Part shown: in pieces, positions 44,825 through 64,000 of the stretch | Position numbering within the stretch: position 1 is the first letter of the stretch | How the letters are laid out: the number at the start of each line of letters is the position of its first letter | Sequence record: LR756501.1 | Length of the DNA stretch: 64,000 bases | Direction: 5' to 3' (one strand) | Translations under genes and position numbers: made by a program | Notes under the pieces: model-generated | What the model was told of the DNA's origin: nothing | The model's input: only the letters and a program-made list of their open reading frames with translations | Database searches by the model: none

Positions 44825-44860
44825 TTCGCTAATATAAATAAAAATGTTGAAATTAAAAAA

Positions 44861-45145: not shown

Positions 45146-45146
45146 A

Positions 45147-45497
45147 TTAATAATTTGGTTTTAATTCTTCCGCTAAATCTGTATAAGCGTCAACGAATTC
45201 TCTTTCAGTTAATTCCCTTAAAACCTTAATCATATGGTTAGGAACGCCAAATCTTATAGTCATTGTGGTCACATTTTTCCTGAGATCATCAATAATATAA
45301 TAATATAAAATTCCTCTATGTGGATAATCAATAGTAAAAATGAATTCTTTTATGTATTGACTATGTACCTTAATTTCAGTAGGATTTAAATTGAGATTTA
45401 CTGCTATTTCCCTTATAATTTCTATATTATCTCTATCGTCCCATCTTTCTTCACCGTACGGGTCAAATTTATTGAAATTATCAAATTTTTTAATCAT
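45147..45497 (-). CDS. Hypothetical protein, CTS-like leader + DPYGEERW
   Basis: MIKKFDNFNKFDPYGEERW. Confidence 0.75.
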   Translation of the reverse strand: MIKKFDNFNKFDPYGEERWDDRDNIEIIREIAVNLNLNPTEIKVHSQYIKEFIFTIDYPHRGILYYYIIDDLRKNVTTMTIRFGVPNHMIKVLRELTEREFVDAYTDLAEELKPNY

Positions 45498-45501
45498 GAA
45501 A

Positions 45502-45711
45502 CTATATATTAAAAATAGTTTTAATATAATTTCTTATTGGTAATTGCTGTTCGTCTGGTAAAAGTTTAATGGATTCAACCGTAACCTCAAATTCGTCTTC
45601 ACGTAATATTCCAAGAAATAATCTTATTCTTGGCGATGTGTTATTGTAAAGGATCATGTGATGGTCGAGTTTTTCGATATCAACGTAAAGAATGTTATCT
45701 TCGTAAGTCAT
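45502..45711 (-). CDS. Small hypothetical protein
   Basis: 69-aa ORF. Confidence 0.6.
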   Translation of the reverse strand: MTYEDNILYVDIEKLDHHMILYNNTSPRIRLFLGILREDEFEVTVESIKLLPDEQQLPIRNYIKTIFNI

Positions 45712-45740
45712 AATATTTTTTTATTTTTATATCACAAAAA

Positions 45741-46961: not shown

Positions 46962-47220
46962 AAGTTTTGTCGATCCACTTATTTCTTTTTATATTTTTTA
47001 TTTCGTCTTCTGTTGCTGGTTGTCCGTCTATCCAGTACTCTATAAACTCATTTTTACCAACAATAGCAGGACCGTTATCTCTATGAAGTTTACCTTTTTG
47101 TAAATACCAAAGATTTCCATTTTTAAAATCGATAGCTGGTCCATCCACTCTATGAAGATAGGTTCTTCTCCTAACTTCATCTAAATAAAAAATATCTCCA
47201 CATATATCAATACTCTTCAT
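46951..47220 (-). CDS. LHRxDGPA-repeat protein
   Basis: LHRVDGPAI, LHRDNGPAI. Confidence 0.75.
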   Translation of the reverse strand: MKSIDICGDIFYLDEVRRRTYLHRVDGPAIDFKNGNLWYLQKGKLHRDNGPAIVGKNEFIEYWIDGQPATEDEIKNIKRNKWIDKTYEN

Positions 47221-47255
47221 ATTTAATATATTCTATTTTTCTTAATTTGTTTTTC

Positions 47256-48563
47256 TTAATCTTTCACTACAATTTGTTTAGCGTTTCCTACTACTTTACA
47301 TTTATCGTGATGACTTATAATCATGCATTTTTTCAAAAGAGTTACATTCAATTCATCAGTCATACCGTCAGTTAATATCAACGTATTCATTTTATTAATC
47401 TTTTTATTAGAAGCTATAAAATTAATACCAGTTTGTAAGGTGGTTCCACCTAATCCAAATATTGCTAATTTTCTAAACTCCGCTTTACTCCTAATCACTT
47501 TGAAATCCTTTACCTCTGTATCACATTGAACTAGATTAATTCTTATACCGTTTTGAAAAATATAAGATAAAGATTTCTCAAAATATCCTTCCATACTACC
47601 AGACACATCCAACATCACATTAAGAGCGTAAGATTCTTTCCTTTTACCTTTAACACCAGGAATACTTCTTCTATTCCTTTTAGTCATAGACTTTTGTTTG
47701 AAATTACCAAATAACTCGTTTATACCAATTTTTATATCTTTAATATAATCTTTCTTTGATTTAGTAATTTTATCAAGAGTTGCTTGTATATCACCTGTAA
47801 GTAATCCTCTGTTCTTCAGTGCGTTCTTCACGTTCTCAATTATACTTTTTCTATATTCTGCTGGTAAATCACAAGGTAAATGGCAGTCTAAAAATTCACA
47901 TAATCCCAATTCTAATTGATCAAATATCCTTCTAAGATAATCACTTACTGGACAATCTGGACAACTACATGGTGCCTTACCGTGCATTCTGTTACATTTA
48001 CATTCTAAATCTTTATCACACTGGCAGTTAGCTTTCCATTCGTCGTACTTTTGTTTTTCAATTATTATCCATTCGTACATTTCTTCAAAAGAAAGTGTAC
48101 CTTTATATTCCTCTGGTTTATGAAGAACCCAAACTTTATTAGTTTCTCTATCGATGGGTATTTCGGCGAATCTAAGGTTTCTTTTATTGATTTTGTTATG
48201 TTGATTCATTTTATCAACGATATCTGTCTTGATAACGTCGTTAATGATCATATCTTGTACGACGTTACTAAGTTCGTGATCGTAACCACATCTTCTTGTT
48301 CTAGCTTGGTGGTCCCAAAGTAGGTGGAATATTTCGTGTAACATAATGAAATTCATTTCTTCTTGGGTAAGAGTATCAATAAACTCTTCGTTGAAATAGA
48401 ATCTCATTCCGTGAATATCAACTGTAACACCACATGTCTTGATATTTTGGAATTTCTTAAAATTTATGAATTGGCAGAACTCTCCGTAATATTGAAGTCC
48501 TAACATAGCGTCAGAAATCATTACGTCAACAGAGTTAATTATTTTTTGATGATTTTCAGCCAT
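47256..48563 (-). CDS. Metallopeptidase-like + VWA domain protein (DUF2201-like)
   Basis: HEIFH (HEXXH); DVSGSM MIDAS, GGGT-like GLGGT, LTDG. Confidence 0.88.
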   Translation of the reverse strand: MAENHQKIINSVDVMISDAMLGLQYYGEFCQFINFKKFQNIKTCGVTVDIHGMRFYFNEEFIDTLTQEEMNFIMLHEIFHLLWDHQARTRRCGYDHELSNVVQDMIINDVIKTDIVDKMNQHNKINKRNLRFAEIPIDRETNKVWVLHKPEEYKGTLSFEEMYEWIIIEKQKYDEWKANCQCDKDLECKCNRMHGKAPCSCPDCPVSDYLRRIFDQLELGLCEFLDCHLPCDLPAEYRKSIIENVKNALKNRGLLTGDIQATLDKITKSKKDYIKDIKIGINELFGNFKQKSMTKRNRRSIPGVKGKRKESYALNVMLDVSGSMEGYFEKSLSYIFQNGIRINLVQCDTEVKDFKVIRSKAEFRKLAIFGLGGTTLQTGINFIASNKKINKMNTLILTDGMTDELNVTLLKKCMIISHHDKCKVVGNAKQIVVKD

Positions 48564-48597
48564 AGCTAGTTATATATGGCTACTAGTAAATTAAGTT

Positions 48598-48638
48598 TAA
48601 AAAAAAAACCGAACTATTGGTGTATAGTTCGGTTATTT
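48598..48638 (-). terminator. Intrinsic terminator
   Basis: aaccgaacta..tagttcggtt hairpin with A tract on +. Confidence 0.75.
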
Positions 48639-48680
48639 AAAAAGAAAGGGACGCATTAGAGGGACACCACCATATTTTTA

Positions 48681-48854
48681 TTAGTTTTCACCGCTACTTT
48701 CACCTTCATATTTAGTGACTTTAGCGTCAATCTCATCAAGTTTTCTCATGATGTCTTTTAACATTTCTCCTATATTTGGATTAACATTTCTTAACCATTT
48801 ATCAACTAAACCTTCGTTGACCTTATCATTTATAATATCGTCAAAACTTTTCAT
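48681..48854 (-). CDS. Small protein with xNE leader (below ORF-track cutoff)
   Basis: 57 aa, MKSFDDIINDKVNEGLVDKW... Confidence 0.65.
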   Translation of the reverse strand: MKSFDDIINDKVNEGLVDKWLRNVNPNIGEMLKDIMRKLDEIDAKVTKYEGESSGEN

Positions 48855-48869
48855 GGTACCTATTTTTTA

Positions 48870-49349
48870 TTAATCTTCAGCTCTTTCCTTGAGTGCATTG
48901 TAGATAGCTGTAGCTTCACCCTTTGCAATTGGAATAGTTACTTCGATTTCTTCACGTGTTTTGGTACGTTTCTTCTCTTCTTTCTTACGTCCACCTTCAT
49001 CTGTGTAAGTTTTTCTGAAAGAATTAGCTTTAGTTCTCCAAAGAGTTAACGATCCTTCGTTCTTGTTGATTTTATGTTTACGTCCACGAATAGTGAAAGT
49101 AACACTTGAATCGGTCACACTAATATCTTTTATTTGATTTTCGTTAACAGACTTCATAATTTGTTGAATGAACTTTGTGCAATTTTCTTTCCAACCTGCA
49201 GCTGTTTGATCCATAACCTTCATGTAAAGGTTTTCGTTAACTACATCAAGACCAACTTCTGTTCTCTTGGTAGATTTTTGTTCTTTTGCCTTCCAACCCG
49301 ATTTATCAAAATCGTCAAAACTTAAAAGGTTTTCTAACTTGTTTCCCAT
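48870..49349 (-). CDS. Basic hypothetical protein
   Basis: 159-aa ORF after a TATATA motif; VVNE site. Confidence 0.72.
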   Translation of the reverse strand: MGNKLENLLSFDDFDKSGWKAKEQKSTKRTEVGLDVVNENLYMKVMDQTAAGWKENCTKFIQQIMKSVNENQIKDISVTDSSVTFTIRGRKHKINKNEGSLTLWRTKANSFRKTYTDEGGRKKEEKKRTKTREEIEVTIPIAKGEATAIYNALKERAED

Positions 49350-49399
49350 ATCTTTAATTGTTATTTTTTTAGTATATATTAATATTTTTTTCCCATTTT

Positions 49400-49597
49400 T
49401 TATTTGCTTGGGTAAAAGAATCTATCGTTGACGAAATTAAATATTCTTTCTTGAACGTCATCGTCTAAATCACCAAATTCGTTTTCTATTTGACGATTTA
49501 AGTCCTCTTGTTCTTCTTCCGAGAATTGAAATGGACCACCTTTTTTATCCACAACTTCTTCCTCACTCATATATTCTAACAACTTTTTAACTTTCAT
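49400..49597 (-). CDS. Small acidic protein
   Basis: MKVKKLLE; TATATA motif upstream. Confidence 0.65.
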   Translation of the reverse strand: MKVKKLLEYMSEEEVVDKKGGPFQFSEEEQEDLNRQIENEFGDLDDDVQERIFNFVNDRFFYPSK

Positions 49598-49643
49598 AAC
49601 GATAAATTATTTTTTCGTATATATTATTTATAAAAATCCGTTT

Positions 49644-50177
49644 TTATTCAGATAAAACATAAAGATCTTCATCAGGTGGCATCGGACAATCTGTAATCCA
49701 CTTAGTACTCCTTACGTCCCAATCCCCCATATCACCAAATTTTTTCACACTAAATACCTTGAGTCTCATATCTTTACCTGGGAATTTCATCTTATCGTAA
49801 CCGTTATCATAAAATAACATTCTATCAAGGGCTGCGTGTAAAGTGAGAGTAACACCATCTAAATGTTTCAAAACTTCTAAAAATTTCTTCTTTGGGTGTG
49901 GCCAAGCGGTATAAAGAAATATCTTTTTATTTCCGTTGCTTCTTAAAATATCTATAACTTGTATTAATCTATCTGGATATAACATTGGTTCACCCCCTGT
50001 TACAAAGACTTCTTCGTAACCCTTTATTTCTTCTACTTTGGCAAGTATGTGGTCGAAATCCATTATTTGATTGCAACAACCTTTACATTTTCTATTACAT
50101 TTAAAGCTCATTACAACTCTTGCAAATCGCTTTTGTGTTTTGTTCTCAAATAGGAATTCGTTAAATTTTGTTTTCAT
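49644..50177 (-). CDS. Radical SAM protein with CTS-like leader
   Basis: ATG at 50177 gives MKTKFNEFLFE; CNRKCKGC, VTGGEP. Confidence 0.85.
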   Translation of the reverse strand: MKTKFNEFLFENKTQKRFARVVMSFKCNRKCKGCCNQIMDFDHILAKVEEIKGYEEVFVTGGEPMLYPDRLIQVIDILRSNGNKKIFLYTAWPHPKKKFLEVLKHLDGVTLTLHAALDRMLFYDNGYDKMKFPGKDMRLKVFSVKKFGDMGDWDVRSTKWITDCPMPPDEDLYVLSE

Positions 50178-50203
50178 ATTACGTATATATAAAAATATAA
50201 AAA

Positions 50204-50240
50204 CAAAAAAGGGGTACTGATTTCTCAATACCCCTTTTTA
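50204..50240 (-). terminator. Terminator after RNase P RNA
   Basis: aaggggta(t/c)tga hairpin + U tract on -. Confidence 0.8.
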
Positions 50241-50251
50241 TGGTTCTTCAC

Positions 50252-50478
50252 GTAATTATCTCGTAGCCGCGATCCTGTTTCTAATCTTACATTTATCTAA
50301 GTCTTTCGACTTCCTTTCCAATGAAAGGTGCACCAACCCGTTCTCATAGACCAGCTCACCGTCTCGAACTGTTTGGCTTGCAACCTCAGTTGTGCAAACG
50401 ACTGATTAGGTCTCCAACTTTAAGCTGTGTTGTCGCGAACTTCCTCTAGTTTTCACCAGCGTAAGATCGAATAACTAC
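50252..50478 (-). ncRNA. rnpB: Minimal RNase P RNA (catalytic domain, reduced specificity domain)
   Basis: P1 gtagttattcg/cgagataattac; P2 atcttac/gtaagat; P3 with GAAA loop; GAGGAAGUUCGCGA pairs with UCGCGGCU (P4, bulged U); P5 caac/gttg then CAAGCCAAA; UAGAUAAAUG; ACAGGA. Confidence 0.85.
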
Positions 50479-50479
50479 C

Positions 50480-51508
50480 TTACTCCCCATACTTTAACAA
50501 GAACTCTGGATTAATAGCCTTGAAAGATACTCTTCCATTCACTAAATCAAAGTCATTCAAAATTGTAATGTCGAAGTCTTGCAACTCAACCAATGGTCTA
50601 ATAACAATACCTTCACGAGGTCCATTACCATTATCTACAACTGTCTTACCCTTTGATAATTCCACAAGTTCGTCAATGTTATTTGTAATAACAAAATCTG
50701 TGAAAAGAACTGGAACAGTTTCCAAACCAAGGCTTTCAATGAAGTTAATAAACTCATCGAAATTGTAGTACTTTTGATCGTCAATGTCGAACACATTGAA
50801 GAATCTAATATTCTGACCCTTGATCTTGTACTTATTGCTTTGGATTCCTTCGCCGTAAATTTCACCTTGTAAACTTACGTTCTTTCCAATACTTCTTAAC
50901 TTGTTCTCGATGTCGAACTTTCTTGTTAACTTCCACAAAGAATTGCCCTCTGTTTCGTTTAACTCTAAGTTCCTCGAACATACACCAAATTCACCGTTAT
51001 TTAAGTAAACTGTGTATGACGAACCGTCAACCTTTTCTGTGTAGTAACACTTTACACCGTTGTACTTATCAAGCAATGCTTGTAAAACTTGTACTCTGGT
51101 TTCATCACTCTTAACGATGAATGAAGGGAACTTACCCTTTGTATCACCACCCAAACAAGCAGGCTCGGCTGGTTCGTACTTGGTAACACCAAGAATTTCT
51201 GTTACATCCATTTCCTCTACAATTTCAATTCCTTCTGGAAGAATTGAAAGAGGGAAACAGATACCTTGACTGATAGCACCACGTAAACGAATTGTACGAA
51301 TACGGAATCCTACCTTTCTCAAGAATTCAAACTTTGGTGAATCTGGAAGTAAACTATCAATCTCACAGTAAACACAAAGATCACCAATATTAAATTCTCC
51401 CTTTTGCACGACTACGTGCCACCCTAAAACTCTTGCCAATTCTAATTGATCTGCGTTAGGGATTGATCTCAAGTCTGAGATCCTCTGAATTGAAGCTAAA
51501 TTTCTCAT
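50480..51508 (-). CDS. ATP-dependent RNA ligase (DRB0094-like)
   Basis: TEKVDGSS motif I, QGEIYG, FFNVF, REGIV, FKAIN; TATATTTG promoter at 51595-51602. Confidence 0.92.
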   Translation of the reverse strand: MRNLASIQRISDLRSIPNADQLELARVLGWHVVVQKGEFNIGDLCVYCEIDSLLPDSPKFEFLRKVGFRIRTIRLRGAISQGICFPLSILPEGIEIVEEMDVTEILGVTKYEPAEPACLGGDTKGKFPSFIVKSDETRVQVLQALLDKYNGVKCYYTEKVDGSSYTVYLNNGEFGVCSRNLELNETEGNSLWKLTRKFDIENKLRSIGKNVSLQGEIYGEGIQSNKYKIKGQNIRFFNVFDIDDQKYYNFDEFINFIESLGLETVPVLFTDFVITNNIDELVELSKGKTVVDNGNGPREGIVIRPLVELQDFDITILNDFDLVNGRVSFKAINPEFLLKYGE

Positions 51509-51626
51509 CTCTTTTCTTATTTTTTAGTTACTGATTATTCTTGGGGAATGTAGCTCAGTAGCCAAAAAATAGTAAGTCGAGTGATACAAGACTACAAATA
51601 TACTATAATTTTTCTGAAATAAAAAA

Positions 51627-51809
51627 TTACCAATTAATAATTTTAAAATTTACACCCTTACTCTTTACTATCTTTCCATCAGCCTCAAGTTCAGCAGTTA
51701 TATTTTTAACCAAAACCTCACTTAAACCTGTGACGTCCCAGTAGTAATGTAAATCACCTTTCTTCGCGCTTTTTAAGATTTCTCTCTTAATTTTCTTAAT
51801 ATCATCCAT
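51627..51809 (-). CDS. Small hypothetical protein
   Basis: 60-aa ORF in operon. Confidence 0.6.
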   Translation of the reverse strand: MDDIKKIKREILKSAKKGDLHYYWDVTGLSEVLVKNITAELEADGKIVKSKGVNFKIINW

Positions 51810-52001
51810 TTAATCTACCTCCCTAAATCTTTTTATTATTCTCTTAAGCTCCTTATAAGCTTTATCTTTAGTTGATTCTTTTACAACAAGTCTTTCATTT
51901 AGTTTCAGATATGCTGTAAAAGAATCTTCTAAAGTGTTTTGAATGTATATAATGTTACCTAACTTCTCATCGTTTTCTTCTGTTACTCTTATATAATTCA
52001 T
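51810..52001 (-). CDS. Small hypothetical protein
   Basis: 63-aa ORF in operon. Confidence 0.6.
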   Translation of the reverse strand: MNYIRVTEENDEKLGNIIYIQNTLEDSFTAYLKLNERLVVKESTKDKAYKELKRIIKRFREVD

Positions 52002-52019
52002 TAATTTATATATTTATTT

Positions 52020-54047
52020 TTAAACCTCCATTCTTTCGTAATGCGAAAATGTTAAATTATTTATCGCTCTCCCCTGTGATAAAGTTCTTAAAGTTGTTAT
52101 AAACCCAAACTTCTCAGATAAAGGCGATTTAACCTTTAATATCACAGTTGAATCAGCTAAAGTATCTATTGATACTACCTGCGAACGACGCCTATTCAAC
52201 TCTCCTATTATATTACTTAAATATTCTTCTGGTGTCGCAACTTCTTCATCCATAATTGGTTCCAATAAAACTGGATTGCCTTTCATGTAAGCTGTTGGAA
52301 ATGAAAGTTTAACACAAGTTTCAAAAGCCAACGGACTAGAATCCACAACGTGAATTGCTCCGTCTATAATAGTTACTTTCAAACTTTCAATTTCATTACC
52401 AGCTAAAGGTCCGCTAACCATACAATCTTTGAAAGCTTTTTCAATAGTTGGCATATATTCTCTTGGAATATTTCCACCTTTGACTTCGTTAACAAAGATT
52501 AAACCTTTAGTATCATCAAGAACTGGCTCCATTCTATATTCGATTTCAGCAAACATACCTTTACCACCAGTTTGTCTTGATAATCTTTCTCTATGTGTTA
52601 CTGGTCTTGTAATAGTTTCTCTATAAGAAACTTTAGGTTGACCAGTATTACAATCAACGTTAAATTCAGTTCCTAATCTACTAACTATAACATCAAGATA
52701 GAGTTCACCCATTCCACTAACAACAGTTTGTCCGTTTTCATCAACCTTTACAGAGAAAGTGGGATCTTCTTCAGCCAATTTTTGTAAAGCAAATCCTAAT
52801 TTATCGTTATCTTTATTAGTTAAAGGTTCAATAGTAATTGATATAACCGGTTTAGCATTTGTTATACTTTCAAGTGTAAAGACGTTCTTATCTCCACATA
52901 AAGTATCACCTGTCCAAATATCTTTCATACCAACTATTGCACAAATATCACCAGCACTAGCCGATTTAATATCTGACTTTTTATCAGCCTGAATTGAGAA
53001 CAATCTTGATATTCTCTCAGCCTTTTTAGTTCTAGCGTTGTAAATAGTCTGTCCAACTTTAATAGTGCCAGAGTAAATTCTAATCATAGATAATTTACCA
53101 GCGTTCTTATCAGACATTATCTTAAACACAAGAGCAGATAAAACTTCATTTTCATTTGTTTTAATTTCTATATCTTCTTCGTCTTTCACTGCTGAAATTG
53201 TACTTCTATCCATTGGTGAAGGAAGAAAATTTACAACCGCGTCCAGTAAAGTTTGTACTCCTTTATTTTTCTTAGCTGTTCCACATAAAACTGGAACTAC
53301 TTTAAAATCAAGAGTTAACTTGCGAATTTTATTGAATATATCTTCTTTGGTTATTGTTTCTATTGCTTCAAAATATTGATGCATGAAATCACTATCGTAA
53401 TCACAAATAGTTTCAAGTATTTGTTCGTGATAGTATATTGCGTTAACCAAATATTCTTCTGGTATTTCAGATACTTCGTATTCTTCGCCTAACGTTTCAC
53501 TATTCCAAGTGATATATTTCATATTGATTAAATCAATAACTCCTTTGAAATTATCTTCACTACCAACAGGTAATTGTATAATAAGAGGTTTTGATTTTAA
53601 TCTATTTTCAATTTGTTCAACAACTTTAAAGAAATCAGCACCAGTTCTATCCATTTTATTAATGAAAGCGATTCTTGGAACTTTATATCTATTAGCTTGA
53701 CGCCAAACTGTTTCAGATTGTGGTTGTACACCGCCAACACCACAGAACACTACAACTGCACCATCTAATATTCTAAGTGAACGTTCTACTTCACCAGTAA
53801 AATCAATATGTCCAGGAGTATCTATAATTGTAATTTTATGATCGTTCCATTCGCAAGTAACTGCAGCAGACATAATTGTAATGCCTCTTTCTCTTTCTTG
53901 TGGCATGGAATCTGTGGTTGTATTACCGTCGTGGACTTCGCCCATTTTATGATTTTGTCCAGTATAATACAATACGCGCTCAGTCAACGTGGTTTTACCA
54001 GCGTCGATGTGTGCTATAATTCCTATATTTCTATTTTTTAAGTTCAT
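52020..54047 (-). CDS. fusA: Elongation factor G
   Basis: [35 protein letters not shown], domain V. Confidence 0.97.
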
Positions 54048-54232
54048 TTTATTTCTATTTTTTTCAACCAGTGTTTTGTGTACACTGTTGTTTTATCTTT
54101 ATCATCGAAACTTACTTTTGTACCGTCCCAGATGCCAACAAGTTCGATATGGATCGTAATCCAACCTTTTCCTCCCCAACCAGACTTAGCATCAATGTAA
54201 ACGACAGTATCACCCGCTTGTATATCATCCAA
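54044..54232 (-). CDS. Small hypothetical protein
   Basis: [11 protein letters not shown]3-like start. Confidence 0.6.
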
Positions 54233-54304
54233 TATGGTCCCTATGGGTTTCCCATATGAATTATACTTCTTATTTATGTATTCAGTATTTGCGGCACATG
54301 TCTC

Positions 54305-54601
54305 CTATAATTTAGATTTTAAAATAGCAATCTCTTTTGAACTTCCTATCTTTCTGTATAATTCATCGGGATGAAATCCATCAGCCCAAGTTTTTCCGCA
54401 AGATTCGTGATATTTTTCAGCAAGTCTGTGATGCTCACCACATAAAGATATACCATTTTCTTTTACGTAACCACCTTCAGGCATTTCATTTCTATCTGTA
54501 ATGTGGTGAGCGTCAACTGCCTCCTTATCACAAAAGACACATTTATATCCGTCTCTTTTAAAGACTTCTGTGCGGAAAATATGTCTAATCAATTTCTTCA
54601 T
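54305..54601 (-). CDS. HNH endonuclease
   Basis: RDGYKCVFC, DAHHI, NGISLCGEHH. Confidence 0.85.
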   Translation of the reverse strand: MKKLIRHIFRTEVFKRDGYKCVFCDKEAVDAHHITDRNEMPEGGYVKENGISLCGEHHRLAEKYHESCGKTWADGFHPDELYRKIGSSKEIAILKSKL

Positions 54602-54605
54602 CCTT

Positions 54606-54773
54606 TTATTCTGTTCCTAATCCGAAATTTGTTTCGTCAATTACGTCTTCAATCAACTCCATTATTTCGTCTTTGATATTCTGCTTGTAAACTTCAGTTC
54701 CTTCCCAGGGATGTTCGATACAGTTTCTATCAATTATTTTTTCAATTTTAGCTTCTAATTTCCATCTGTCCAT
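54606..54773 (-). CDS. Small hypothetical protein (start 54773)
   Basis: MDRWKLEAK...; aggagg-like RBS upstream. Confidence 0.6.
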   Translation of the reverse strand: MDRWKLEAKIEKIIDRNCIEHPWEGTEVYKQNIKDEIMELIEDVIDETNFGLGTE

Positions 54774-54792
54774 AACATCCTCCTTTCTTAAT

Positions 54793-54868
54793 TGGCGGCC
54801 CATACGGGAGTTGAACCCGCTCCATACTCCGTGACAGGGAGACATCTTAACCGTTTGACCTATGAGCC
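54793..54868 (-). tRNA. tRNA-Asp(GTC), CCA encoded
   Basis: ctcc-CTGTCAC-ggag. Confidence 0.92.
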
Positions 54869-54873
54869 ATTTG

Positions 54874-54944
54874 CAGTACCGGCAGGATTCGAACCTACAA
54901 CCCCCGCCTCACTGGCGGTACACGTCCAATTGTGCTTCAATACT
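54874..54944 (-). tRNA. Atypical tRNA, possible GTG (His) anticodon in an aberrant loop
   Basis: Acceptor, D and T arms present; ccgcc-AGTGA-ggcgg, no U33. Confidence 0.5.
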
Positions 54945-55004
54945 AACACATTGATTTTATTAGCTCTTATTACAATGTGACTTATACTTTTGATATAAGA
55001 TTTG

Positions 55005-55078
55005 CAGTATGGACGGGATTCGAACCCGCGACCTTCGCCGTGACAGGGCGACATTCTAACCAACTGAACTACCAAACT
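55005..55078 (-). tRNA. tRNA-Asp(GTC)
   Basis: tcgcc-CTGTCAC-ggcga. Confidence 0.92.
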
Positions 55079-55083
55079 ATTTG

Positions 55084-55164
55084 TGGGAGTAGAAGGACTC
55101 GAACCTCCGAACTCTATGAGAACAGATTTACAGTCTGCTGCAATTGCCGCTATGCGATACTCCC
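55084..55164 (-). tRNA. tRNA-Tyr(GTA)
   Basis: gcaga-CTGTAAA-tctgt; long variable arm. Confidence 0.92.
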
Positions 55165-55169
55165 ATTTG

Positions 55170-55242
55170 TCGTGATGATTGGATTCGAACCAACGGTCGC
55201 CTGTTTATCCGACAGGTGCTCTAACCTCTGAGCTACACCACA
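55170..55242 (-). tRNA. tRNA-Ile(GAT), G33 variant
   Basis: cctgt-CGGATAA-acagg. Confidence 0.75.
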
Positions 55243-55331
55243 TCGCCCTGTTTTATTAAGCTTTTATGTGCACTTATTACTTTTTTATTCAGAACGTATT
55301 AACACCTTCCGATGTTAAATATTTTAAAGAA

Positions 55332-55391
55332 CAGAATACATTTGTTGTTTCAATTTACAGTTGAGTCGTTTTTGTTTGCTGTAAGTATTCT
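55332..55391 (-). ncRNA. UUACAGCAA stem element with a Tyr-type anticodon loop
   Basis: agaatac/gtattct stem; tcaa-CTGTAAA-ttga. Confidence 0.55.
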
Positions 55392-55402
55392 TTAATCTCT
55401 TG

Positions 55403-55476
55403 CGGGCCCAGTGAGAGTCGAACTCACATCTGATCGGTTAACAGCCGAGGGTTTTATCCATTAGTACTACAGGCCC
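55403..55476 (-). tRNA. tRNA-Asn(GTT)
   Basis: tcgg-CTGTTAA-ccga. Confidence 0.9.
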
Positions 55477-55491
55477 ATTATGCTTTAATCT

Positions 55492-55566
55492 TGGAGGACG
55501 AGGGGAATATCGAAATCCCGACCCATTGGTTAACAGCCAATCGCTCTGCCTCTGAGCTACTCATCC
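55492..55566 (-). tRNA. tRNA-Asn(GTT), CCA encoded
   Basis: attgg-CTGTTAA-ccaat. Confidence 0.9.
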
Positions 55567-55568
55567 AT

Positions 55569-55645
55569 TGGCTCCCCAGACAGGACTTGAACCTGTGACC
55601 CTTTGATTAACAGTCAAATGCTCTAACCAACTGAGCTACTGAGGA
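55569..55645 (-). tRNA. tRNA-Asn(GTT), CCA encoded
   Basis: tttga-CTGTTAA-tcaaa. Confidence 0.93.
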
Positions 55646-55653
55646 ATATTTTG

Positions 55654-55730
55654 CGGACCCAAAGGGATTCGAACCCTCCTGTTTGTACTGAGTGACAGTC
55701 AGACGGCCACGCCTAGCAGCCCCTGAGTCC
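55654..55730 (-). tRNA. tRNA-Asp(GTC)
   Basis: ctga-CTGTCAC-tcag. Confidence 0.85.
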
Positions 55731-55734
55731 ATTT

Positions 55735-55825
55735 AGTAGTATGTGTATTGTGTAGTTGCATCCGTTGATCAGGCTTTATTACGTAATTATCCTGTAGGAC
55801 TCGGCCGCACATAACCCACACTACT
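55735..55825 (-). ncRNA. Candidate structured ncRNA inside the tRNA array
   Basis: Closing stem agtagtgtg/cacatactact; internal cagg/cctg. Confidence 0.4.
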
Positions 55826-55830
55826 TTTTG

Positions 55831-55905
55831 TCGGCGAGGGAGGACTTGAACCTCCAACCTCGAAGTTATCAGCTTCGCCATCTAACCAATTGATAATACA
55901 CGCCG
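55831..55905 (-). tRNA. tRNA-Ile(GAT)
   Basis: cgaag-CTGATAA-cttcg. Confidence 0.9.
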
Positions 55906-55911
55906 TTGTTG

Positions 55912-55983
55912 AGGTAGTGGAGGGATTTGAACCCCCGTCTCTGGTTTTGCAGACCATCGCCTAAGCCACTCGGCCACACTACC
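55912..55983 (-). tRNA. tRNA-Cys(GCA)
   Basis: tggt-CTGCAAA-acca; U73. Confidence 0.92.
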
Positions 55984-56003
55984 CTATAATAATATTTCAA
56001 TAC

Positions 56004-56013
56004 TTCAAAGAAC
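56004..56013 (-). promoter_or_regulatory. boxA-like element
   Basis: GTTCTTTGAAgTATTGAAATA. Confidence 0.65.
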
Positions 56014-56400
56014 TAATTTATATTCATCATATTTCTTACTAAGAGTAAGTGTACTTTTAGCGTTTATTTCACAACTAGGTATCGAATAAGCATCACCTAT
56101 ATCTGTTAAAATAAACAAAATATCACAATTTCTATTATCAAAGTAATGAATATTGTGATTACTTTTATTTCCACCACACGTTTTAATATTTACATTGTAA
56201 GAACCATATTTAGTCTTATATTGAGTTGTTTTAACTTGAACTTTTTTTAATTCACCATCATCTAATATCAAATCATATTTTTGATTCTCACTTATCGGTA
56301 AAGATACTGTAAATCCCATTTTTTGATATTCATATAGTGCTTTACATAATCCTATATTACCTTGGTCAGTTGTTGTTAAACAGTTTTTAAATAATTCCAT
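56005..56400 (-). CDS. Free-standing PD-(D/E)XK endonuclease (PDDEXK_5-like)
   Basis: GNIG..A, YDLILDD, KVQVKT. Confidence 0.82.
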   Translation of the reverse strand: MELFKNCLTTTDQGNIGLCKALYEYQKMGFTVSLPISENQKYDLILDDGELKKVQVKTTQYKTKYGSYNVNIKTCGGNKSNHNIHYFDNRNCDILFILTDIGDAYSIPSCEINAKSTLTLSKKYDEYKLVL

Positions 56401-56453
56401 TTTCGTTTTTATATTTATATATAAAAAACGGTATGGCCTACCTTTGTAAATAT

Positions 56454-56463
56454 TTCAAAGAAC
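56454..56463 (-). promoter_or_regulatory. boxA-like element
   Basis: GTTCTTTGAAATATT. Confidence 0.6.
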
Positions 56464-56473
56464 TCTTTTTTTG

Positions 56474-56541
56474 TGCCGCCGGAAGGAATTGAACCTTCTC
56501 GCTAAGCTTTTACAGAGCTGTCGTCTCCCTGGATCGTCGGC
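56474..56541 (-). tRNA. Atypical short tRNA with GTA (Tyr) anticodon, no long variable arm, reduced D arm
   Basis: agct-CTGTAAA-agct; gaagg-TTCAATT-ccttc; 68 nt. Confidence 0.55.
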
Positions 56542-56596
56542 TTATAAATTTCTACGCACTATTAGATGCTGCCTATGAAATTTTAACAGTCTGCTG

Positions 56597-56671
56597 TGGG
56601 TATGGCAGGACTTGAACCTACAACCTTGTCGGTATCAGCGACATGCTCTCAACCAATTGAGCTACACACCC
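56597..56671 (-). tRNA. tRNA-Ile(GAT)
   Basis: tgtcg-CTGATAC-cgaca. Confidence 0.92.
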
Positions 56672-59634: not shown

Positions 59635-59829
59635 TTATATTAGCTTAACATCAATTGCATTTAATCCTTTTTTACCTTGAGTTAATTCAAACTCAACCTC
59701 GTCATTTTCTTGTATTCTGTCGACTAAACCTGTGGCGTGTACAAAATACTCTTTTCCTGTTTCATTTTCTAAAATAAAACCAAAACCTTTAGCTTCATTG
59801 AAGAACTTTACTTTTCCATTCATATTCAT
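59635..59829 (-). CDS. csp: Cold-shock protein
   Basis: GKVKFFNEAKGFGFI, YFVHATG. Confidence 0.95.
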   Translation of the reverse strand: MNMNGKVKFFNEAKGFGFILENETGKEYFVHATGLVDRIQENDEVEFELTQGKKGLNAIDVKLI

Positions 59830-59915
59830 TATTGTATTTATTTTTTTATCGCAGAACAACATGTCCTACGATATACATATTATATATAATAGGAAAAGTT
59901 TGATATTTATCCATT

Positions 59916-60626
59916 TTAATAATTGTAAGCCTGCTCACATTTCCTACATATTACATCACTATCACTAACTACACACTTTGATATAACATCTAACCTGTTC
60001 TTCATAAAAGAATCGTAATGTCCTTCATAAATATTTCCTATCCAATGTTTCAAAGACCAATCATTACAACATAAATATAAATCACCGCTAGGCAAAACAA
60101 CATTAGAAAAATATCTATTAGTCGTACATTTTATAGGTCCAAGTTTCTTTGCGACCTCCCAATTATTACCACTCCTAGACACAGGATTAGTAATCCTAGT
60201 TGTATTAAAAGATTTTGACTTTATACTATCGACGAATTTCTTTTTAACTGATTCAAATTTTTCCAAATTAAAACCGTTACCTTTATATTCGTGAAAATCA
60301 ACGTGTGAAAATACTATTCCAGATTTTGATAATTTCTCAATCTTTTCATCTGTTAAGCTTTCTAACGTTGTATAAAGAACAACTGAAAATCCTCTTCTAT
60401 ACGATTCAATCATCATATCCTCAGCTTCATCTGTTAGAAAAGCCTCTGAGAACCCAGAGAAATGTACTTGTGTTTTAGTAGGATTGATATGACTTAAAAT
60501 GATTCTAAAATCATCAAGAGTCATTACCTTTTTTGTATGTTTATAAGAATCCGATAAAGATTTCTGTGGGCAGTAAACACACATATTTTTACAACCTATT
60601 CTTGTAGTTATTTCAATCCAATTCAT
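59916..60626 (-). CDS. Radical SAM/SPASM protein
   Basis: CKNMCVYC; GDLYLCC..WIGNI; CRKC. Confidence 0.88.
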   Translation of the reverse strand: MNWIEITTRIGCKNMCVYCPQKSLSDSYKHTKKVMTLDDFRIILSHINPTKTQVHFSGFSEAFLTDEAEDMMIESYRRGFSVVLYTTLESLTDEKIEKLSKSGIVFSHVDFHEYKGNGFNLEKFESVKKKFVDSIKSKSFNTTRITNPVSRSGNNWEVAKKLGPIKCTTNRYFSNVVLPSGDLYLCCNDWSLKHWIGNIYEGHYDSFMKNRLDVISKCVVSDSDVICRKCEQAYNY

Positions 60627-60891: not shown

Positions 60892-62418
60892 TTACATTCT
60901 GAATCCTGGTGCAATTGGTTCCATCGCGTCCATAATCGCATCATAACCATCCTTCCAGATGTTTATATCTGTTGTCTTCGATATAGCGTTATAAGTTTCC
61001 ATAGCAGTCGAAACTATCGTGTTAAACTTATAAGTCCTCTCATATACATCCTTTGTTCTCTGCTTCATCACTTCAATCCTATTCTTCGCCCAATCTTCGT
61101 TCTTCTTGTTCTCTACGTAAACCATTCCTTTGGTTCTTTCAAATCCGTTCTTAAATTTCTTAAAGAACCTGTTACAACCCGATATATTATCATCTATCCA
61201 CTCAAAATCTTGATCAGGAGGACCAGCAAACATTATATACATTCTTATCACATCACTTCCGTACTTCTCTACCATTTCATCTGGCGATACACCGTTACCA
61301 AAGTTCTTAGACATCTTCTTACCATCCTTCTTTACCATACCCTGTGTGATAACCTTACCAAATGGTTCAGTAGGAGCGTCCTCTGGAATATATCCCATCT
61401 TCTTAAACATTCTCCAAAAAAATCTAGCATATATCATATGACCAGTAGCGTGCTCAGCTCCACCAATATAATAATCAATTGGAAACCAATGTTTTATCTT
61501 ATCCCAATCAAATCTTTTTCCGTTAAAATCTGAAATATATCTGATGAAGTACCAGCTTGATTGAACGAATGTGTCCATAGTATCTGTTTCCTTTTCAGCT
61601 TCTCCACCACAAACTGGACATTCAATATGTTTCCAAGTTGGGTGATTTGATATAGGATTACCTTTGCCGTTAAATTCTACATCGTGAGGGGCAATAACTG
61701 GTATTTGTTCGTTTGGAACAGTACCACATTTTGGACAATTGATCATAGGTATTGGTGTTCCCCAAAATCTTTGTCTTGAGATGCACCAGTCCGTGAAGGG
61801 TCTAACTTCATCACCTTCTCTAATACCATTCTTAATAAATTGTTTCTGCTGTTTTGTAATAATTTCAGGCCAATCTTTCTCAATGTCTTTTATAGATTCA
61901 TACATTTCATCTGCAAACATAGTTGTTTTGAAATAATATTGAACCATCTCTTTCTTCTCAATCTTAGCTCCTGATCTCCACCCCTTTCCATCAATAACTT
62001 GATTCGACGCCATAACTGTTTGATCTACAGGGTCCCAATTTACAATACCAACTTTCTTTTCGATGAAACCAGCTTTCCAAGCGTCTATGAAAAATCTCTG
62101 CTCATGTTTCCAATAATCAACTTCACAAGTTGAAATTTCTTTATCCCAATCGAAAGACATATTCATTCTTTTCATTTGGTCTCGCATGTTATCAATATTG
62201 GCATCAGTCCATTCCATAGGATGAATGTTATTTTTGATAGCTGCGTTTTCTGCTGGCATACCAAAGGAATCCCAACCGATAGGGTGGCAAACTTCGTAAC
62301 CTTTATTTCTCCAGTACCTGGCTATTGCGTCAGATATTGTATAGTTTCTCATATGACCCATGTGGATATTACCGGATGGGTAGGGTATCATAGGAACAAC
62401 AAACATTTTTTTCTTCAT
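60892..62418 (-). CDS. leuS: Minimal leucyl-tRNA synthetase (no CP1 editing domain, no C-terminal domain)
   Basis: MIPYPSGNIHMGH, GWDSFGMPAENAA, DWCISRQRFWGTPIP, TDTMDTF, KMSKN; only 508 aa. Confidence 0.92.
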   Translation of the reverse strand: MKKKMFVVPMIPYPSGNIHMGHMRNYTISDAIARYWRNKGYEVCHPIGWDSFGMPAENAAIKNNIHPMEWTDANIDNMRDQMKRMNMSFDWDKEISTCEVDYWKHEQRFFIDAWKAGFIEKKVGIVNWDPVDQTVMASNQVIDGKGWRSGAKIEKKEMVQYYFKTTMFADEMYESIKDIEKDWPEIITKQQKQFIKNGIREGDEVRPFTDWCISRQRFWGTPIPMINCPKCGTVPNEQIPVIAPHDVEFNGKGNPISNHPTWKHIECPVCGGEAEKETDTMDTFVQSSWYFIRYISDFNGKRFDWDKIKHWFPIDYYIGGAEHATGHMIYARFFWRMFKKMGYIPEDAPTEPFGKVITQGMVKKDGKKMSKNFGNGVSPDEMVEKYGSDVIRMYIMFAGPPDQDFEWIDDNISGCNRFFKKFKNGFERTKGMVYVENKKNEDWAKNRIEVMKQRTKDVYERTYKFNTIVSTAMETYNAISKTTDINIWKDGYDAIMDAMEPIAPGFRM

Positions 62419-63185
62419 TTCTTTTCCTTTCTCGTGAAATGATCTATATTTATATTATATTTTTTTATAGAATAATAAACGTAATGTTTCACTTTACTAT
62501 TATAATTAACATTCAAATTATCAGCTATATCTCGATATGATTTTGATTTTTTAACAACAGTTTCTAAAAATTCTTTATCTAAACTTTTATCAAAATTTCC
62601 ATAATTTCTTTTATTTACATAATCTTTCCAGTTTTCATTTTCAAGAATATCCAATTTGTCTTCGTCATATCTAAAATAACAACTTCCCGCACTACCTTTT
62701 AAATCACAACTAAATTTTATTTGTTGTCTAAATATTCCAGTTTCTCTCTCGGCTCCTCTTATGCTAATGAATTTTTTTATTGGATTTAAATTTAAATCAT
62801 ACATTATTATTGATCTTTTTCTGGTGTTAGATATTTTCATCAATTTTTTACTCTCTTCGCTGTGTTTTTTACCCAACCAAGATACTCCGTCACCACCATC
62901 AGTTTGATTTTTTAACTTAAACCCCCAAACTTTAAATTGGCATATCCAATATTTTTCTAAGCTATTGATATTATTATCATCACCTATATCCAATATTTCT
63001 ATAATTGGAACCAATTTTTTATTTTTTAAATATTTTAACCATTTATTCTTTTTTGTCCAAGGTTCCAATTGAATATAATAATCAGAATAATGTCTTTTAA
63101 CTCTTTTTTCAATATTGTTAGTTTTCCCAATATATTTTATATCACCGTCTTCTGGATCTGTTAAAGTGTAAATGAATTGTTCCAT
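62415..63185 (-). CDS. GIY-YIG homing endonuclease with NUMOD3/NUMOD1-like modules
   Basis: FIYTL..KYIGKT; GKKHSEESK; KKFISIRGAERETG. Confidence 0.88.
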   Translation of the reverse strand: MEQFIYTLTDPEDGDIKYIGKTNNIEKRVKRHYSDYYIQLEPWTKKNKWLKYLKNKKLVPIIEILDIGDDNNINSLEKYWICQFKVWGFKLKNQTDGGDGVSWLGKKHSEESKKLMKISNTRKRSIIMYDLNLNPIKKFISIRGAERETGIFRQQIKFSCDLKGSAGSCYFRYDEDKLDILENENWKDYVNKRNYGNFDKSLDKEFLETVVKKSKSYRDIADNLNVNYNSKVKHYVYYSIKKYNINIDHFTRKEKK

Positions 63186-63240
63186 AATAAGTTTTTATCT
63201 TTATATATAAAAATTATATGGTCCCATTGTTTCATATTTG

Positions 63241-63314
63241 TGGCCCTACCCAGACTCGAACTGGGACATCAAGTTTCTAAGACTTGCGCGACTACGCTAT
63301 TACGCCATAGAGCC
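63241..63314 (-). tRNA. tRNA with TAG (Leu) anticodon, short variable loop
   Basis: caagt-CTTAGAA-acttg; 4-5-nt variable loop. Confidence 0.8.
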
Positions 63315-63319
63315 ATTTG

Positions 63320-63392
63320 TAACCCTGCACGGAGTCGAACCGAGATATTCTGGTTTTAAGCCAGACGCCACTACCAATTAGGCTACAGAGTC
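63320..63392 (-). tRNA. tRNA with TAA (Leu) anticodon, short variable loop
   Basis: tctgg-CTTAAAA-ccaga; 4-5-nt variable loop. Confidence 0.8.
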
Positions 63393-63402
63393 ATTTTTAT
63401 TG

Positions 63403-63486
63403 TACCGAGGATGGGAGTCGAACCCACACGTCCGTAAGGACACTGGTTTTTGAGACCAGCGCGTCTACCAGTTCCGCCACCTCGGC
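63403..63486 (-). tRNA. tRNA-Leu(CAA)
   Basis: ctggt-CTCAAAA-accag; long variable arm. Confidence 0.93.
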
Positions 63487-63489
63487 ATG

Positions 63490-63610
63490 TGATGAAGTAA
63501 TAGGATTCGAACCTATATGACTGATTTCTCAGCGGTTAGCCCTTGTACTTCGGTCTTTCCCATTTTCACCCTAAACGGGTGATACGTTTCCATTTTAGTC
63601 CTACTTCATC
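63490..63610 (-). ncRNA. tRNA-like element, up to 9-bp acceptor, expanded body
   Basis: gatgaagta/tacttcatc; atagg-TTCGAAT-cctat; tcaccc/gggtga; ctga-GAAA-tcag. Confidence 0.55.
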
Positions 63611-63612
63611 TG

Positions 63613-63696
63613 TGCGGTTAAGGGGACTCGAACCCCTACGTCCTTGCGGACACCAGCCCCTCAAGCTGGCGCGTCTACCAATTCCGCCATAACCGC
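63613..63696 (-). tRNA. tRNA-Leu(GAG)
   Basis: ccagc-TTGAGGG-gctgg. Confidence 0.93.
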
Positions 63697-63702
63697 GTTG
63701 TG

Positions 63703-63784
63703 TGCCCTTGACAGGACTCGAACCTGCACATCCGAAGACACTAGATCCTAAGTCTAGCGCGTCTACCAATTCCGCCACAAGGGC
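63703..63784 (-). tRNA. tRNA-Leu(TAG)
   Basis: ctaga-CTTAGGA-tctag. Confidence 0.93.
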
Positions 63785-63790: not shown

Positions 63791-63928
63791 AGATTGCCTT
63801 TTTAAAATAAGGTTGGATTCGAACCAACATTCTCCATCTTTGCTTTTTCTCTGCGTCCAATGGTGTGTTACCCTTACACTACTCTCCCAATTTTTGGCGG
63901 GAGCCGTTTTGTTTGCTGTAAGCAATCT
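63791..63928 (-). ncRNA. UUACAGCAA stem element enclosing a degenerate tRNA body
   Basis: agattgc/gcaatct stem; D arm gtgt/acac; T arm gttgg-TTCGAAT-ccaac. Confidence 0.55.
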
Positions 63929-63954: not shown

Positions 63955-63990
63955 TAAAAACAAAAAACCCAATCATTGCTGATTGGGTCT
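63955..63990 (-). terminator. Third attenuator-type terminator, before the Leu array
   Basis: acccaatca-GCAA-tgattgggt + U tract. Confidence 0.85.
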
Positions 63991-64000
63991 CTGTGACTTC

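Follow-up and report, generated by a model that had tools for sequence, protein, structure and literature searches.

We analyzed leuS, an open reading frame (ORF) on the minus strand of a 64,000-nucleotide stretch of DNA (hereafter the window) that matches exactly the 735,411-bp genome LR756501.1. The gene encodes a leucyl-tRNA synthetase (LeuRS) of the bacterial type that is missing the CP1 domain, the leucine-specific domain, the C-terminal domain and the N-terminal helix, and that does not contain a single leucine. A 735-kb genome was reported by Al-Shayeb et al. in 2020 as the largest known for a phage, within the Mahaphage clade and with a predicted Bacteroidetes host (PMC7162821); the carrier of leuS is a huge freshwater phage that probably infects Bacteroidota. 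We consider it probable, at about 0.6, that leuS specifies a functional, radically reduced LeuRS which forms, together with five tRNA-Leu genes located upstream, a self-starting leucine-charging module that can be translated without Leu-tRNALeu. As a LeuRS lacking four segments the protein is a variant of a known enzyme type. The leucine-free composition, the linked short tRNA-Leu genes and a parallel purging in other synthetases point to a design principle for which we found no description in a literature search.

Architecture and conservation of the reduced LeuRS

The leuS product scored 557.9 bits against the bacterial LeuRS profile TIGR00396 (leuS_bact), for which the curated cut-off is 548.4. 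This profile outscored the Val, Ile and Met models by a wide margin, the runners-up being ValRS (192 bits) and IleRS (165 bits), and a class I catalytic domain was found with Pfam. The protein aligned with the LeuRS of Neisseria gonorrhoeae in three blocks (phage residues 2–196 with 33–226, 207–364 with 429–586, and 364–483 with 631–759). The gene and the segments of its product are as follows.

60892–62418, minus strand: leuS, bacterial-type LeuRS of 508 aa, with an ATG start and the stop codon TAA at 60892–60894
62353–62364, minus strand: HIGH signature, present as HMGH, residues 19–22
61930–62064, minus strand: ZN domain, residues ~119–163 (E. coli 149–193)
61792–61833, minus strand: linker KNGIREGDEVRPFT at the CP1 site, 14 residues, 196–209
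61759–61791, minus strand: DWCISRQRFWG motif, residues 210–220
61573–61746, minus strand: second zinc-knuckle insertion past the CP1 site, residues 225–282
61303–61332, minus strand: KKDG at the site of the leucine-specific domain, then the KMSKS signature as KMSKN, residues 363–372
60919–61203, minus strand: helix bundle of the anticodon-binding domain, residues 406–500

Alignment with the E. coli LeuRS (sequence from NC_000913) located the losses. E. coli residues 1–30, which form the N-terminal helix, have no counterpart in the phage protein. CP1 (E. coli 227–412, approximately 186 residues) is replaced by the 14-residue linker, such that WPEIITKQQKQFI (183–195) is followed by residues 196–209 and then by DWCISRQ (210–216). 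The leucine-specific domain (E. coli 574–617) is replaced by KKDG, and E. coli residues 779–860, comprising the last helix of the anticodon-binding domain and the C-terminal domain, are gone. The terminus of the phage protein, ...EPIAPGFRM, falls at the position of E. coli residue ~778, 8 residues past the helix bundle and ahead of where the C-terminal domain would be. A reading of the sequence alone had described leuS as a 508-residue LeuRS without CP1 and without the C-terminal domain, with about 15 residues at the CP1 junction, and had proposed that this be checked by alignment. The alignment confirms that description, sets the linker at 14 residues, and reveals that the losses are larger than had been noted, the N-terminal helix and the leucine-specific domain being gone as well. 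The leucine-specific domain is also absent from the LeuRS of Bacillus subtilis (PMC3643597) and, by alignment, from that of Nautilia, so its loss is not peculiar to the phage protein.

The catalytic machinery is largely intact. The blocks HMGH, GWDSFGMPAE, YIGG.EHA..H..Y.RFF, QGMV and KMSK[S/N] are all present. Residues of the E. coli leucine/ATP pocket and of the ZN lid have been named in a 2026 structural study (PMC13454842); retained in the phage protein are Y43, W177, R178, F493, H533, H537, Y540, K619 and K622 (E. coli numbering). The ZN domain is of the zinc-less Asp type (D129, D132, G146 and S149 in the phage protein), as it is in Neisseria, with W147 and R148 retained. All 46 clade members share the four cysteines of the second zinc knuckle (C228, C231, C267 and C270). 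An AlphaFold2 model built from 46 sequences had a mean predicted local distance difference test score (pLDDT) of 91.3, with 91–98 over blocks 401–500, and a predicted template modeling score (pTM) of 0.90. All of the top 50 Foldseek matches to this model were LeuRS, with template modeling (TM) scores per query of 0.81–0.90 (0.85–0.90 for the best matches). The TM score per target was approximately 0.55 for full-length enzymes and 0.70–0.76 for the CP1-less enzyme of M. mobile.

A potential concern with so short a protein is that the gene itself has been truncated. The stop-to-stop frame of leuS spans 520 codons, only 12 of which are open upstream of the start, and past the TAA stop codon every frame is either closed or part of the next gene. 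An upstream start and read-through were both considered and rejected, since neither would recover the missing ends. The truncations are common to about 45 relatives and so are not an artefact of assembly or of a frameshift. We also searched the whole 735-kb genome for the missing parts. No second LeuRS piece was detected beyond leuS with TIGR00396 or PF00133, and CP1 (PF13603) had no match in the leuS product or in the genome even at E values up to 10. Across the same genome there was no match to the C-terminal 90 residues of the E. coli LeuRS, and neither a Trbp111-type tRNA_bind domain (PF01588) nor a YbaK-type trans-editing domain (PF04073) was found. These homology searches speak against the supply of the missing domains by separate genes, which the sequence-only reading had named as grounds for abandoning its interpretation. 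No conserved neighbor that might act as a partner was identified at the locus: the downstream genes vary among relatives, and a cold-shock-domain gene recurs in one close relative only.

Comparison of leuS with its closest orthologues gave proportions of nonsynonymous differences (pN) of 0.08–0.21, with synonymous sites saturated (pS 0.72–0.87). The gene is under strong purifying selection and is not decaying. Approximately 45 protein clusters of 508–547 aa, with 61–86% identity and found on contigs of up to 549 kb, share the same architecture; the N-terminal helix is missing from the four closest members, the phage leuS product included. Three further members of 645–647 aa retain a mini-CP1 of 112 residues in which the threonine-rich motif, Asp342 and Asp345 are intact. 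In a LeuRS tree, which was unrooted and for which the bacterial sequences were picked by similarity to the query, the clade was monophyletic on a long stem, with the mini-CP1 forms nested within it. This nesting suggests that CP1 has been lost repeatedly. At 50% clustering the clade collapses to a single representative (858 bits, the next match being 546 bits), and the nearest matches outside it are Campylobacterota-like LeuRS with 44–48% identity. A second and much larger clade was found in IMG/VR, made up of LeuRS-like proteins of ~405–435 aa with 31–42% identity on contigs of up to 608 kb. In this ~420-aa clade the second zinc knuckle is gone as well and the proteins end at the same point (..APGF..). 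Another phage LeuRS of 645 aa lacks CP1 and retains the C-terminal domain. Among the LeuRS of huge phages, domain loss is thus widespread.

Absence of leucine and cognate depletion in other synthetases

The leuS frame contains no TTA, TTG or CTN codon. With leucine at 7.8–7.9% in the genome, about 40 leucines would be expected in 508 residues, and their complete absence has a P of ~9e-19. The genome has 558 ORFs of 150 aa or more; among these, leuS was the sole one with two leucines or fewer, and it stood alone among proteins of normal complexity in lacking exactly one common amino acid at such significance. A wider set of leucine-free genes in the phage was considered and rejected, the other ORFs free of a given residue being low-complexity giants or ordinary cases such as a Trp-free GroEL. 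As a separate observation, the giant low-complexity ORFs (2816–3487 aa, at LR756501.1 ~392–419 kb and 102.9–111.3 kb) are strongly depleted in many residues simultaneously and are unrelated to the synthetase pattern.

Leucine is low throughout the clade and significantly below the proteome level. Among the 46 members, 41 have none and five have one, each at a different place, and the mini-CP1 forms are included in this count; the bacterial homologues have 57–74 leucines each. At 32 columns occupied by leucine in bacteria, the clade carries Ile (28%), Met (23%), Phe (13%) or Val (8%). Further LeuRS lineages are also depleted relative to their own contigs, with 6 leucines in 503 residues (contig level 10.4%), 14 in 507 (47.8 expected), 20 in 681 (10.8%) and 28 in 768 (8.7%). 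Because leuS has no leucine codon, its synthesis is independent of its own product, and the enzyme could probably be translated even in a cell without any charged leucine tRNA. The absence of leucine points to this independence, rather than to sloppiness, as the main rationale. A catch-22 logic of the same form has been used to explain cognate bias in biosynthetic enzymes (PMC4209129). Our full-text literature search, the coverage of which was incomplete, returned no leucine-free LeuRS, no cognate-purged phage synthetase and no phage type I tRNA-Leu.

A blind screen for depletion of any single common residue was performed on 637 long ORFs from 85 loci, mostly of huge phages. The leuS genes of the P0001 type ranked at the top, and the screen also flagged a truncated, CP1-less ValRS-like protein. 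The synthetase genes considered here, including two from LR756501.1 itself, are listed below.

L020, 2548–3918, and L134, 5001–6359: Val-free ValRS-like genes on phage contigs of 132 kb and 80 kb
L077, 7842–10526: full-length IleRS, 894 aa, on a 332-kb phage contig
L136, 6994–16152; L137, 637–4945; and L129, 383–3028: clusters of miniature synthetases
Window 2207–3835, plus strand: full-length GluRS (TIGR00464, 475 bits versus a cut-off of 290)
LR756501.1 204434–205147, minus strand: truncated TrpRS-like protein, 237 aa, covering model positions 7–218 of 328

From its first Met the ValRS-like protein has 442 residues and no Val, the listed 456-aa ORF beginning at an upstream alternative start codon. 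A relative of 456 aa (66% identical) likewise has zero Val. The ValRS-like gene lies 5 kb from a LeuRS gene of the ~420-aa type. In the full-length IleRS, Ile makes up 3.0% of residues versus 7.0% locally (P ~1e-7). A SerRS without the N-terminal tRNA-binding arm and with a single Ser adjoins one of the Leu-poor LeuRS genes; it belongs to a Ser-poor family with 1–3 Ser, the median of 114 other SerRS being 5.0%. Two further metagenomic contigs, of 220 and 93 kb, bear groups of miniature genes for AlaRS, SerRS, LeuRS, TyrRS and a GlyRS-like protein. Across the L136, L137 and L129 clusters the products are AlaRS (301 and 449 aa), SerRS (321, 352 and 357 aa, without the N-terminal arm), LeuRS (503 and 507 aa), TyrRS (235 and 380 aa) and a GlyRS-like protein (208 aa). 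One phage-type gene is present on the 220-kb contig, and two of the contigs with purged synthetases lie outside IMG/VR. In L136 and L137 the cognate residue is the most depleted one in 8 of 8 synthetases, and the SerRS and LeuRS pair of L129 is likewise cognate-poor. Most of the synthetases depleted in their own residue (Val, Ser, Ala, Tyr, Gly, Ile) are truncated. An IMG/VR search for the Ser-poor SerRS family returned a single weak relative, and the gene context was taken from other metagenome contigs; no tRNA genes, and hence no short tRNA-Ser counterpart, stand beside the Ser-poor SerRS clusters. The TrpRS-like protein of LR756501.1 has no Trp with three expected, which is not significant; its gene adjoins a 91-nt tRNA for which ARAGORN called a 4-nt anticodon. 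These data indicate that cognate purging is frequent, and not universal, in metagenomic synthetases, some of them on phage contigs.

tRNA partners and locus context

Transfer RNA genes were called with ARAGORN and Rfam. All five tRNA-Leu among the 59 tRNAs of the genome lie within 1.4 kb upstream of leuS on the same strand, with a further ORF and a hairpin at the borders of the cluster.

63240–63314, minus strand: tRNA-Leu(UAG), 75 nt, short variable loop, type I-like, A73
63319–63392, minus strand: tRNA-Leu(UAA), 74 nt, short variable loop, type I-like, A73
63402–63486, minus strand: tRNA-Leu(CAA), 85 nt, type II (long variable arm), A73
63612–63696, minus strand: tRNA-Leu(GAG), 85 nt, type II, A73
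63702–63784, minus strand: tRNA-Leu(UAG), 83 nt, type II, A73
62415–63185, minus strand: GIY-YIG/NUMOD homing-endonuclease-like ORF, 256 aa, between the tRNA-Leu cluster and leuS
63963–63992, minus strand: terminator-like hairpin, 13-bp stem and T run, upstream of the tRNA-Leu cluster

The two short tRNA-Leu have variable loops of 4–5 nt. The short tRNA-Leu(UAG) has UGCGUAG in its D-loop in place of UGGUAG, and the short tRNA-Leu(UAA) is the sole phage tRNA for UUA, a codon that accounts for 48% of the leucine codons. Both short genes are 96–98% identical in a relative whose leuS has saturated synonymous sites; this conservation despite saturation indicates that they are functional genes. Among short tRNA-Leu genes of related loci, 28 of 30 retain A73.

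The pairing of leuS with tRNA-Leu recurs in related phages. Among 57 non-redundant LeuRS loci, tRNAs were found within 8 kb at 28, and a tRNA-Leu is the closest one at 12 of these. Leucine tRNAs make up 77 of the 254 tRNAs flanking LeuRS loci, versus 5 of 59 genome-wide, with the caveat that phage relatedness inflates the counts. Of the 77 flanking tRNA-Leu, 30 were short, whereas all 15 tRNA-Ser called in the 65 sequences scanned, before de-duplication, were long. Short tRNA-Leu genes occur with both phage clades that are without the C-terminal domain, all counted loci being LeuRS-carrying ones. The earlier suggestion that the enzyme is tuned to unusual tRNAs thus gains circumstantial support, in the form of five adjacent tRNA-Leu genes of which two are short.

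The homing-endonuclease-like ORF overlaps the start of leuS by 4 nt. In the closest relative, L011, this gene is absent and the tRNAs abut leuS; it is probably a selfish insertion confined to the LR756501.1 genome and not a part of the module. The terminator-like hairpin is loosely consistent with the tRNA-Leu cluster and leuS opening a new transcription unit. A scan for sigma-70 promoters returned 26 sites with 21 expected.

Several other features of the region were recorded. Between tRNA-Leu(CAA) and tRNA-Leu(GAG), at window 63487–63611 on the minus strand, lies a 125-nt tRNA-like structured RNA whose fold has an acceptor-like stem of 9 bp, a hairpin resembling a T arm and further hairpins (minimum free energy -35.5 kcal/mol, z = -3.96); neither ARAGORN, even with introns allowed, nor Rfam called it. 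At window 63804–63888 (minus strand) there is a weak tRNA match (38.5 bits) whose anticodon arm carries 24 inserted nt and whose acceptor stem is poor; this element may be a degenerate or unusual tRNA. Another 22 tRNA genes, at window 38815–56671 (minus strand), fall into groups of like identity (Glu x3, Met/Ile, Gln, Asp/Asn/Tyr/Ile/Cys), with tRNA-Ile(UAU) and a tRNA-Met of 91 nt among them. Several types of tRNA that are normally short reach 82–91 nt in related phages. Among the tRNA clusters are genes for an RNA ligase (PHA02142 OB-fold and RNA_ligase domains; window 50480–51508, minus strand) and for a complete EF-G homologue (window 52020–54047, minus strand), which suggests tRNA repair and a phage-encoded translation factor. 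Downstream of leuS are genes for a cold-shock-domain protein (window 59635–59862, minus strand) and a radical SAM protein (window 59916–60626, minus strand); in L011 the cold-shock-domain gene follows leuS directly. Elsewhere in LR756501.1, at 690585–690738, are two tRNAs with the CUA anticodon, of the amber-suppressor type. Of 242 long ORFs only 12 end in TAG, which makes it the least frequent stop; leuS uses TAA.

Competing readings, proposed role and known systems

Several observations weigh against a functional and self-starting charging module. Arg416 and Arg418 of the E. coli LeuRS, which contact the tRNA discriminator A73 (PMC6614811), are replaced by Pro and Thr in the phage protein and are missing from all CP1-less members. 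In the P0001–P0003 subgroup, E169 is changed to Asn (N139) in a pairing with the change of Ser623 to Asn; in the N. gonorrhoeae LeuRS the substitution E169G reduced activation efficiency 24-fold (PMC13454842). No extra positive charge that would offset the lost tRNA-binding domain was found in the phage enzyme, the isoelectric point of the core being 6.8 versus approximately 6.5 in bacteria. No leuS transcript was found in two metatranscriptomes from samples containing the phage DNA (at a DNA depth of only 2–5x), the contigs of which cover only conserved tRNA pieces of other organisms. The ~420-aa phage LeuRS clade has a normal leucine content (6.5%), and the GluRS of LR756501.1 has a normal Glu content, an exception indicating that purging is not universal. 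Since the ~420-aa clade is reduced yet leucine-normal, and the IleRS is depleted yet full-length, domain loss and purging are separable traits.

One alternative is that the protein binds leucine, ATP or tRNA-Leu without charging and acts as a sensor, a tRNA-sequestering factor or an enzyme that forms adenylates for a different acceptor, comparable to the paralogues LeuRS-I of archaea and LeuRS2 of halobacteria. This would accord with the loss of the arginines that contact A73, with the finding that deletion of the C-terminal domain kills charging in model bacterial LeuRS (PMC3561953), and with the behavior of LeuRS-I, in which CP1 is disrupted and the C-terminus has diverged, and which forms Leu-AMP and binds tRNA yet cannot aminoacylate (PMC9437257). 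We regard it as unlikely, because a leucine-free composition best suits a protein that restores Leu-tRNALeu, because the gene is tightly linked to tRNA-Leu in many phages, and because the KMSKS loop, the ZN lid residues and the helix bundle are conserved. Equal purging in the Ser, Val, Ala, Tyr, Gly and Ile enzymes argues in addition for a common translational role, not for leucine-specific moonlighting. It is decidedly unlikely, too, that the leucine purge serves to shield an editing-less enzyme from its own mischarging, that is, from feed-forward errors at its leucine positions. Many of the purged enzymes do lack an editing domain (the CP1-less LeuRS, the CP1-less ValRS-like protein and an AlaRS reduced to its catalytic part), but the mini-CP1 members with intact editing motifs are equally leucine-free, the full-length IleRS is Ile-depleted, and leucine codons are still used by every other phage protein. 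TyrRS, SerRS and GlyRS have little or no need for editing, and TyrRS, SerRS and the GlyRS-like protein are purged too.

The two remaining alternatives concern the shortness of the protein. Editing and tRNA-binding functions might be supplied in trans by a highly diverged phage protein or by a host factor; LeuRS is split in Aquifex, most genes of the LR756501.1 phage are without known function, and domains as small as the C-terminal one (approximately 60 residues) are hard to detect. We consider such a supply very improbable, given that the whole-genome searches turned up no LeuRS piece, no CP1, no C-terminal domain and no Trbp111-type or YbaK-type domain, and that no gene is kept beside leuS across relatives save the cold-shock-domain protein in one close relative. 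That leuS is a decaying fragment of a captured bacterial gene, an idea that would draw on its shortness alone, is scarcely credible in view of the strong purifying selection, the confident fold, and an architecture kept over at least 46 sequence clusters on contigs of up to 549 kb. The removal of about 60 leucines while catalytic residues were kept is incompatible with neutral decay.

We therefore favor a reduced enzyme that charges tRNA-Leu; this activity we infer from the conservation of the protein, its linkage to tRNA-Leu and its leucine-free composition. The retained parts (the Rossmann catalytic core with the ZN lid and the KMSKS loop, the second zinc knuckle, and the helix bundle) would activate leucine and transfer it to tRNA-Leu. 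With CP1, the N-terminal helix, the leucine-specific domain and the C-terminal domain lost, charging is expected to proceed with no post-transfer proofreading and no grip on the tRNA elbow or the long variable arm. Error-prone charging is plausible by analogy with the M. mobile LeuRS; we likewise infer the lack of fidelity, a preference for short tRNAs and the condition that would select for a leucine-free enzyme. Ribosomes could make the leucine-free enzyme while Leu-tRNALeu is scarce or absent; once made, it would recharge the tRNAs encoded beside it, among them the two short type I species, and leucine decoding would resume. The tRNA-Leu cluster and leuS would in this way constitute a leucine-decoding module.

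Three candidate causes for an emptied Leu-tRNALeu pool may be envisaged. One is a toxin or nuclease of the host that attacks type II tRNAs; as a precedent, the toxin MenT3 picks tRNA-Ser by its long variable loop and ignores a tRNA from which the arm has been deleted (PMC11541572). Another is a phage-made shut-off of host translation genes, as suggested by Al-Shayeb et al. (PMC7162821), and the third is a starved host. More tentatively, and at somewhat less than even odds, we propose that huge phages carry self-starting, host-independent modules, each consisting of a core-only, cognate-purged synthetase with phage tRNAs, among them leucine tRNAs without the long variable arm, that are nearly orthogonal and restore decoding after the loss of host tRNAs or synthetases. 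Under this proposal the cause of the loss would be either a defence toxin that recognizes the long variable arm or a shut-off imposed by the phage itself.

If active, the phage LeuRS would be smaller than the M. mobile record holder, and the C-terminal domain, which is essential in model bacteria, would be dispensable in nature, perhaps with a switch to short-arm tRNA-Leu. Cognate purging across Leu, Val, Ser, Ala, Tyr, Gly and Ile enzymes would provide a simple and testable rule for synthetase carriage by phages, and suggests that the loss of specific aminoacyl-tRNAs may be a recurrent battleground or bottleneck in infected cells. The leucine-free LeuRS would, if the broader proposal on huge-phage modules is true, be the clearest case of a general design rule in viral translation takeover. 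A compact pair of synthetase and tRNA that starts from zero is also a candidate for the engineering of orthogonal translation.

The closest known counterpart is the LeuRS of M. mobile (PDB 3ZIU). In both enzymes CP1 is replaced by a short linker, a nonapeptide in M. mobile and 14 residues in the phage, and a tetrapeptide with DG at its end stands directly ahead of KMSKS in place of the leucine-specific domain (GKDG and KKDG, respectively); 3ZIU and the phage model superimpose with a TM score of 0.84–0.85 per query. The M. mobile LeuRS charges actively without CP1 and the leucine-specific domain (PMC3643597). It is, however, a cellular enzyme of 637 aa that retains the C-terminal domain (residues 554–637 align with the E. 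coli C-terminus) and the N-terminal helix (the alignment starts at residue 35), whereas the phage protein is viral, leucine-free, 508 aa in length and without either segment. Because this minimal cellular LeuRS retains its C-terminal domain, the phage forms exceed its reduction. Common descent of the two was not borne out: the M. mobile LeuRS is a weaker match to the phage protein than is a proteobacterial LeuRS (E 4.7e-84 versus 3.6e-134), and the phage clade is an isolated lineage on a long stem.

Other reduced or altered LeuRS share single traits with the phage enzyme. Engineered LeuRS from which the C-terminal domain has been deleted also lack the elbow-binding part, but they lose aminoacylation and post-transfer editing (PMC3561953), whereas the phage form is naturally selected, conserved, and found beside short-loop tRNA-Leu. 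In the LeuRS-I of Sulfolobaceae and the LeuRS2 of halobacteria, CP1 is disrupted or absent and the C-terminus is altered (PMC9437257). Unlike the phage enzyme, these proteins are archaeal-type cellular duplicates that exist beside a canonical LeuRS, with no cognate purging or tRNA-gene linkage reported. The avoidance of an amino acid by its own supplier has a precedent in cognate bias (Alves and Savageau; Fasani and Savageau 2014, PMC4209129), an example being the Trp-free alpha subunit of tryptophan synthase. There it is a statistical trend of cellular biosynthesis; here it is an all-or-nothing purge (approximately 40–60 positions) of a viral charging enzyme, and extends to several synthetase families. 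With respect to the tRNA partner, the LeuRS of systems that use type I tRNA-Leu, as in S. coelicolor and animal mitochondria, are long enzymes that keep CP1 and the C-terminal domain. Type I tRNA-Leu occurs in Streptomyces coelicolor and in mitochondria, and the S. coelicolor type I species is less dependent on elbow stability (PMC6614811). The S. coelicolor LeuRS requires its leucine-specific domain for the type I tRNA, whereas the phage enzyme, with KKDG in its place, has none.

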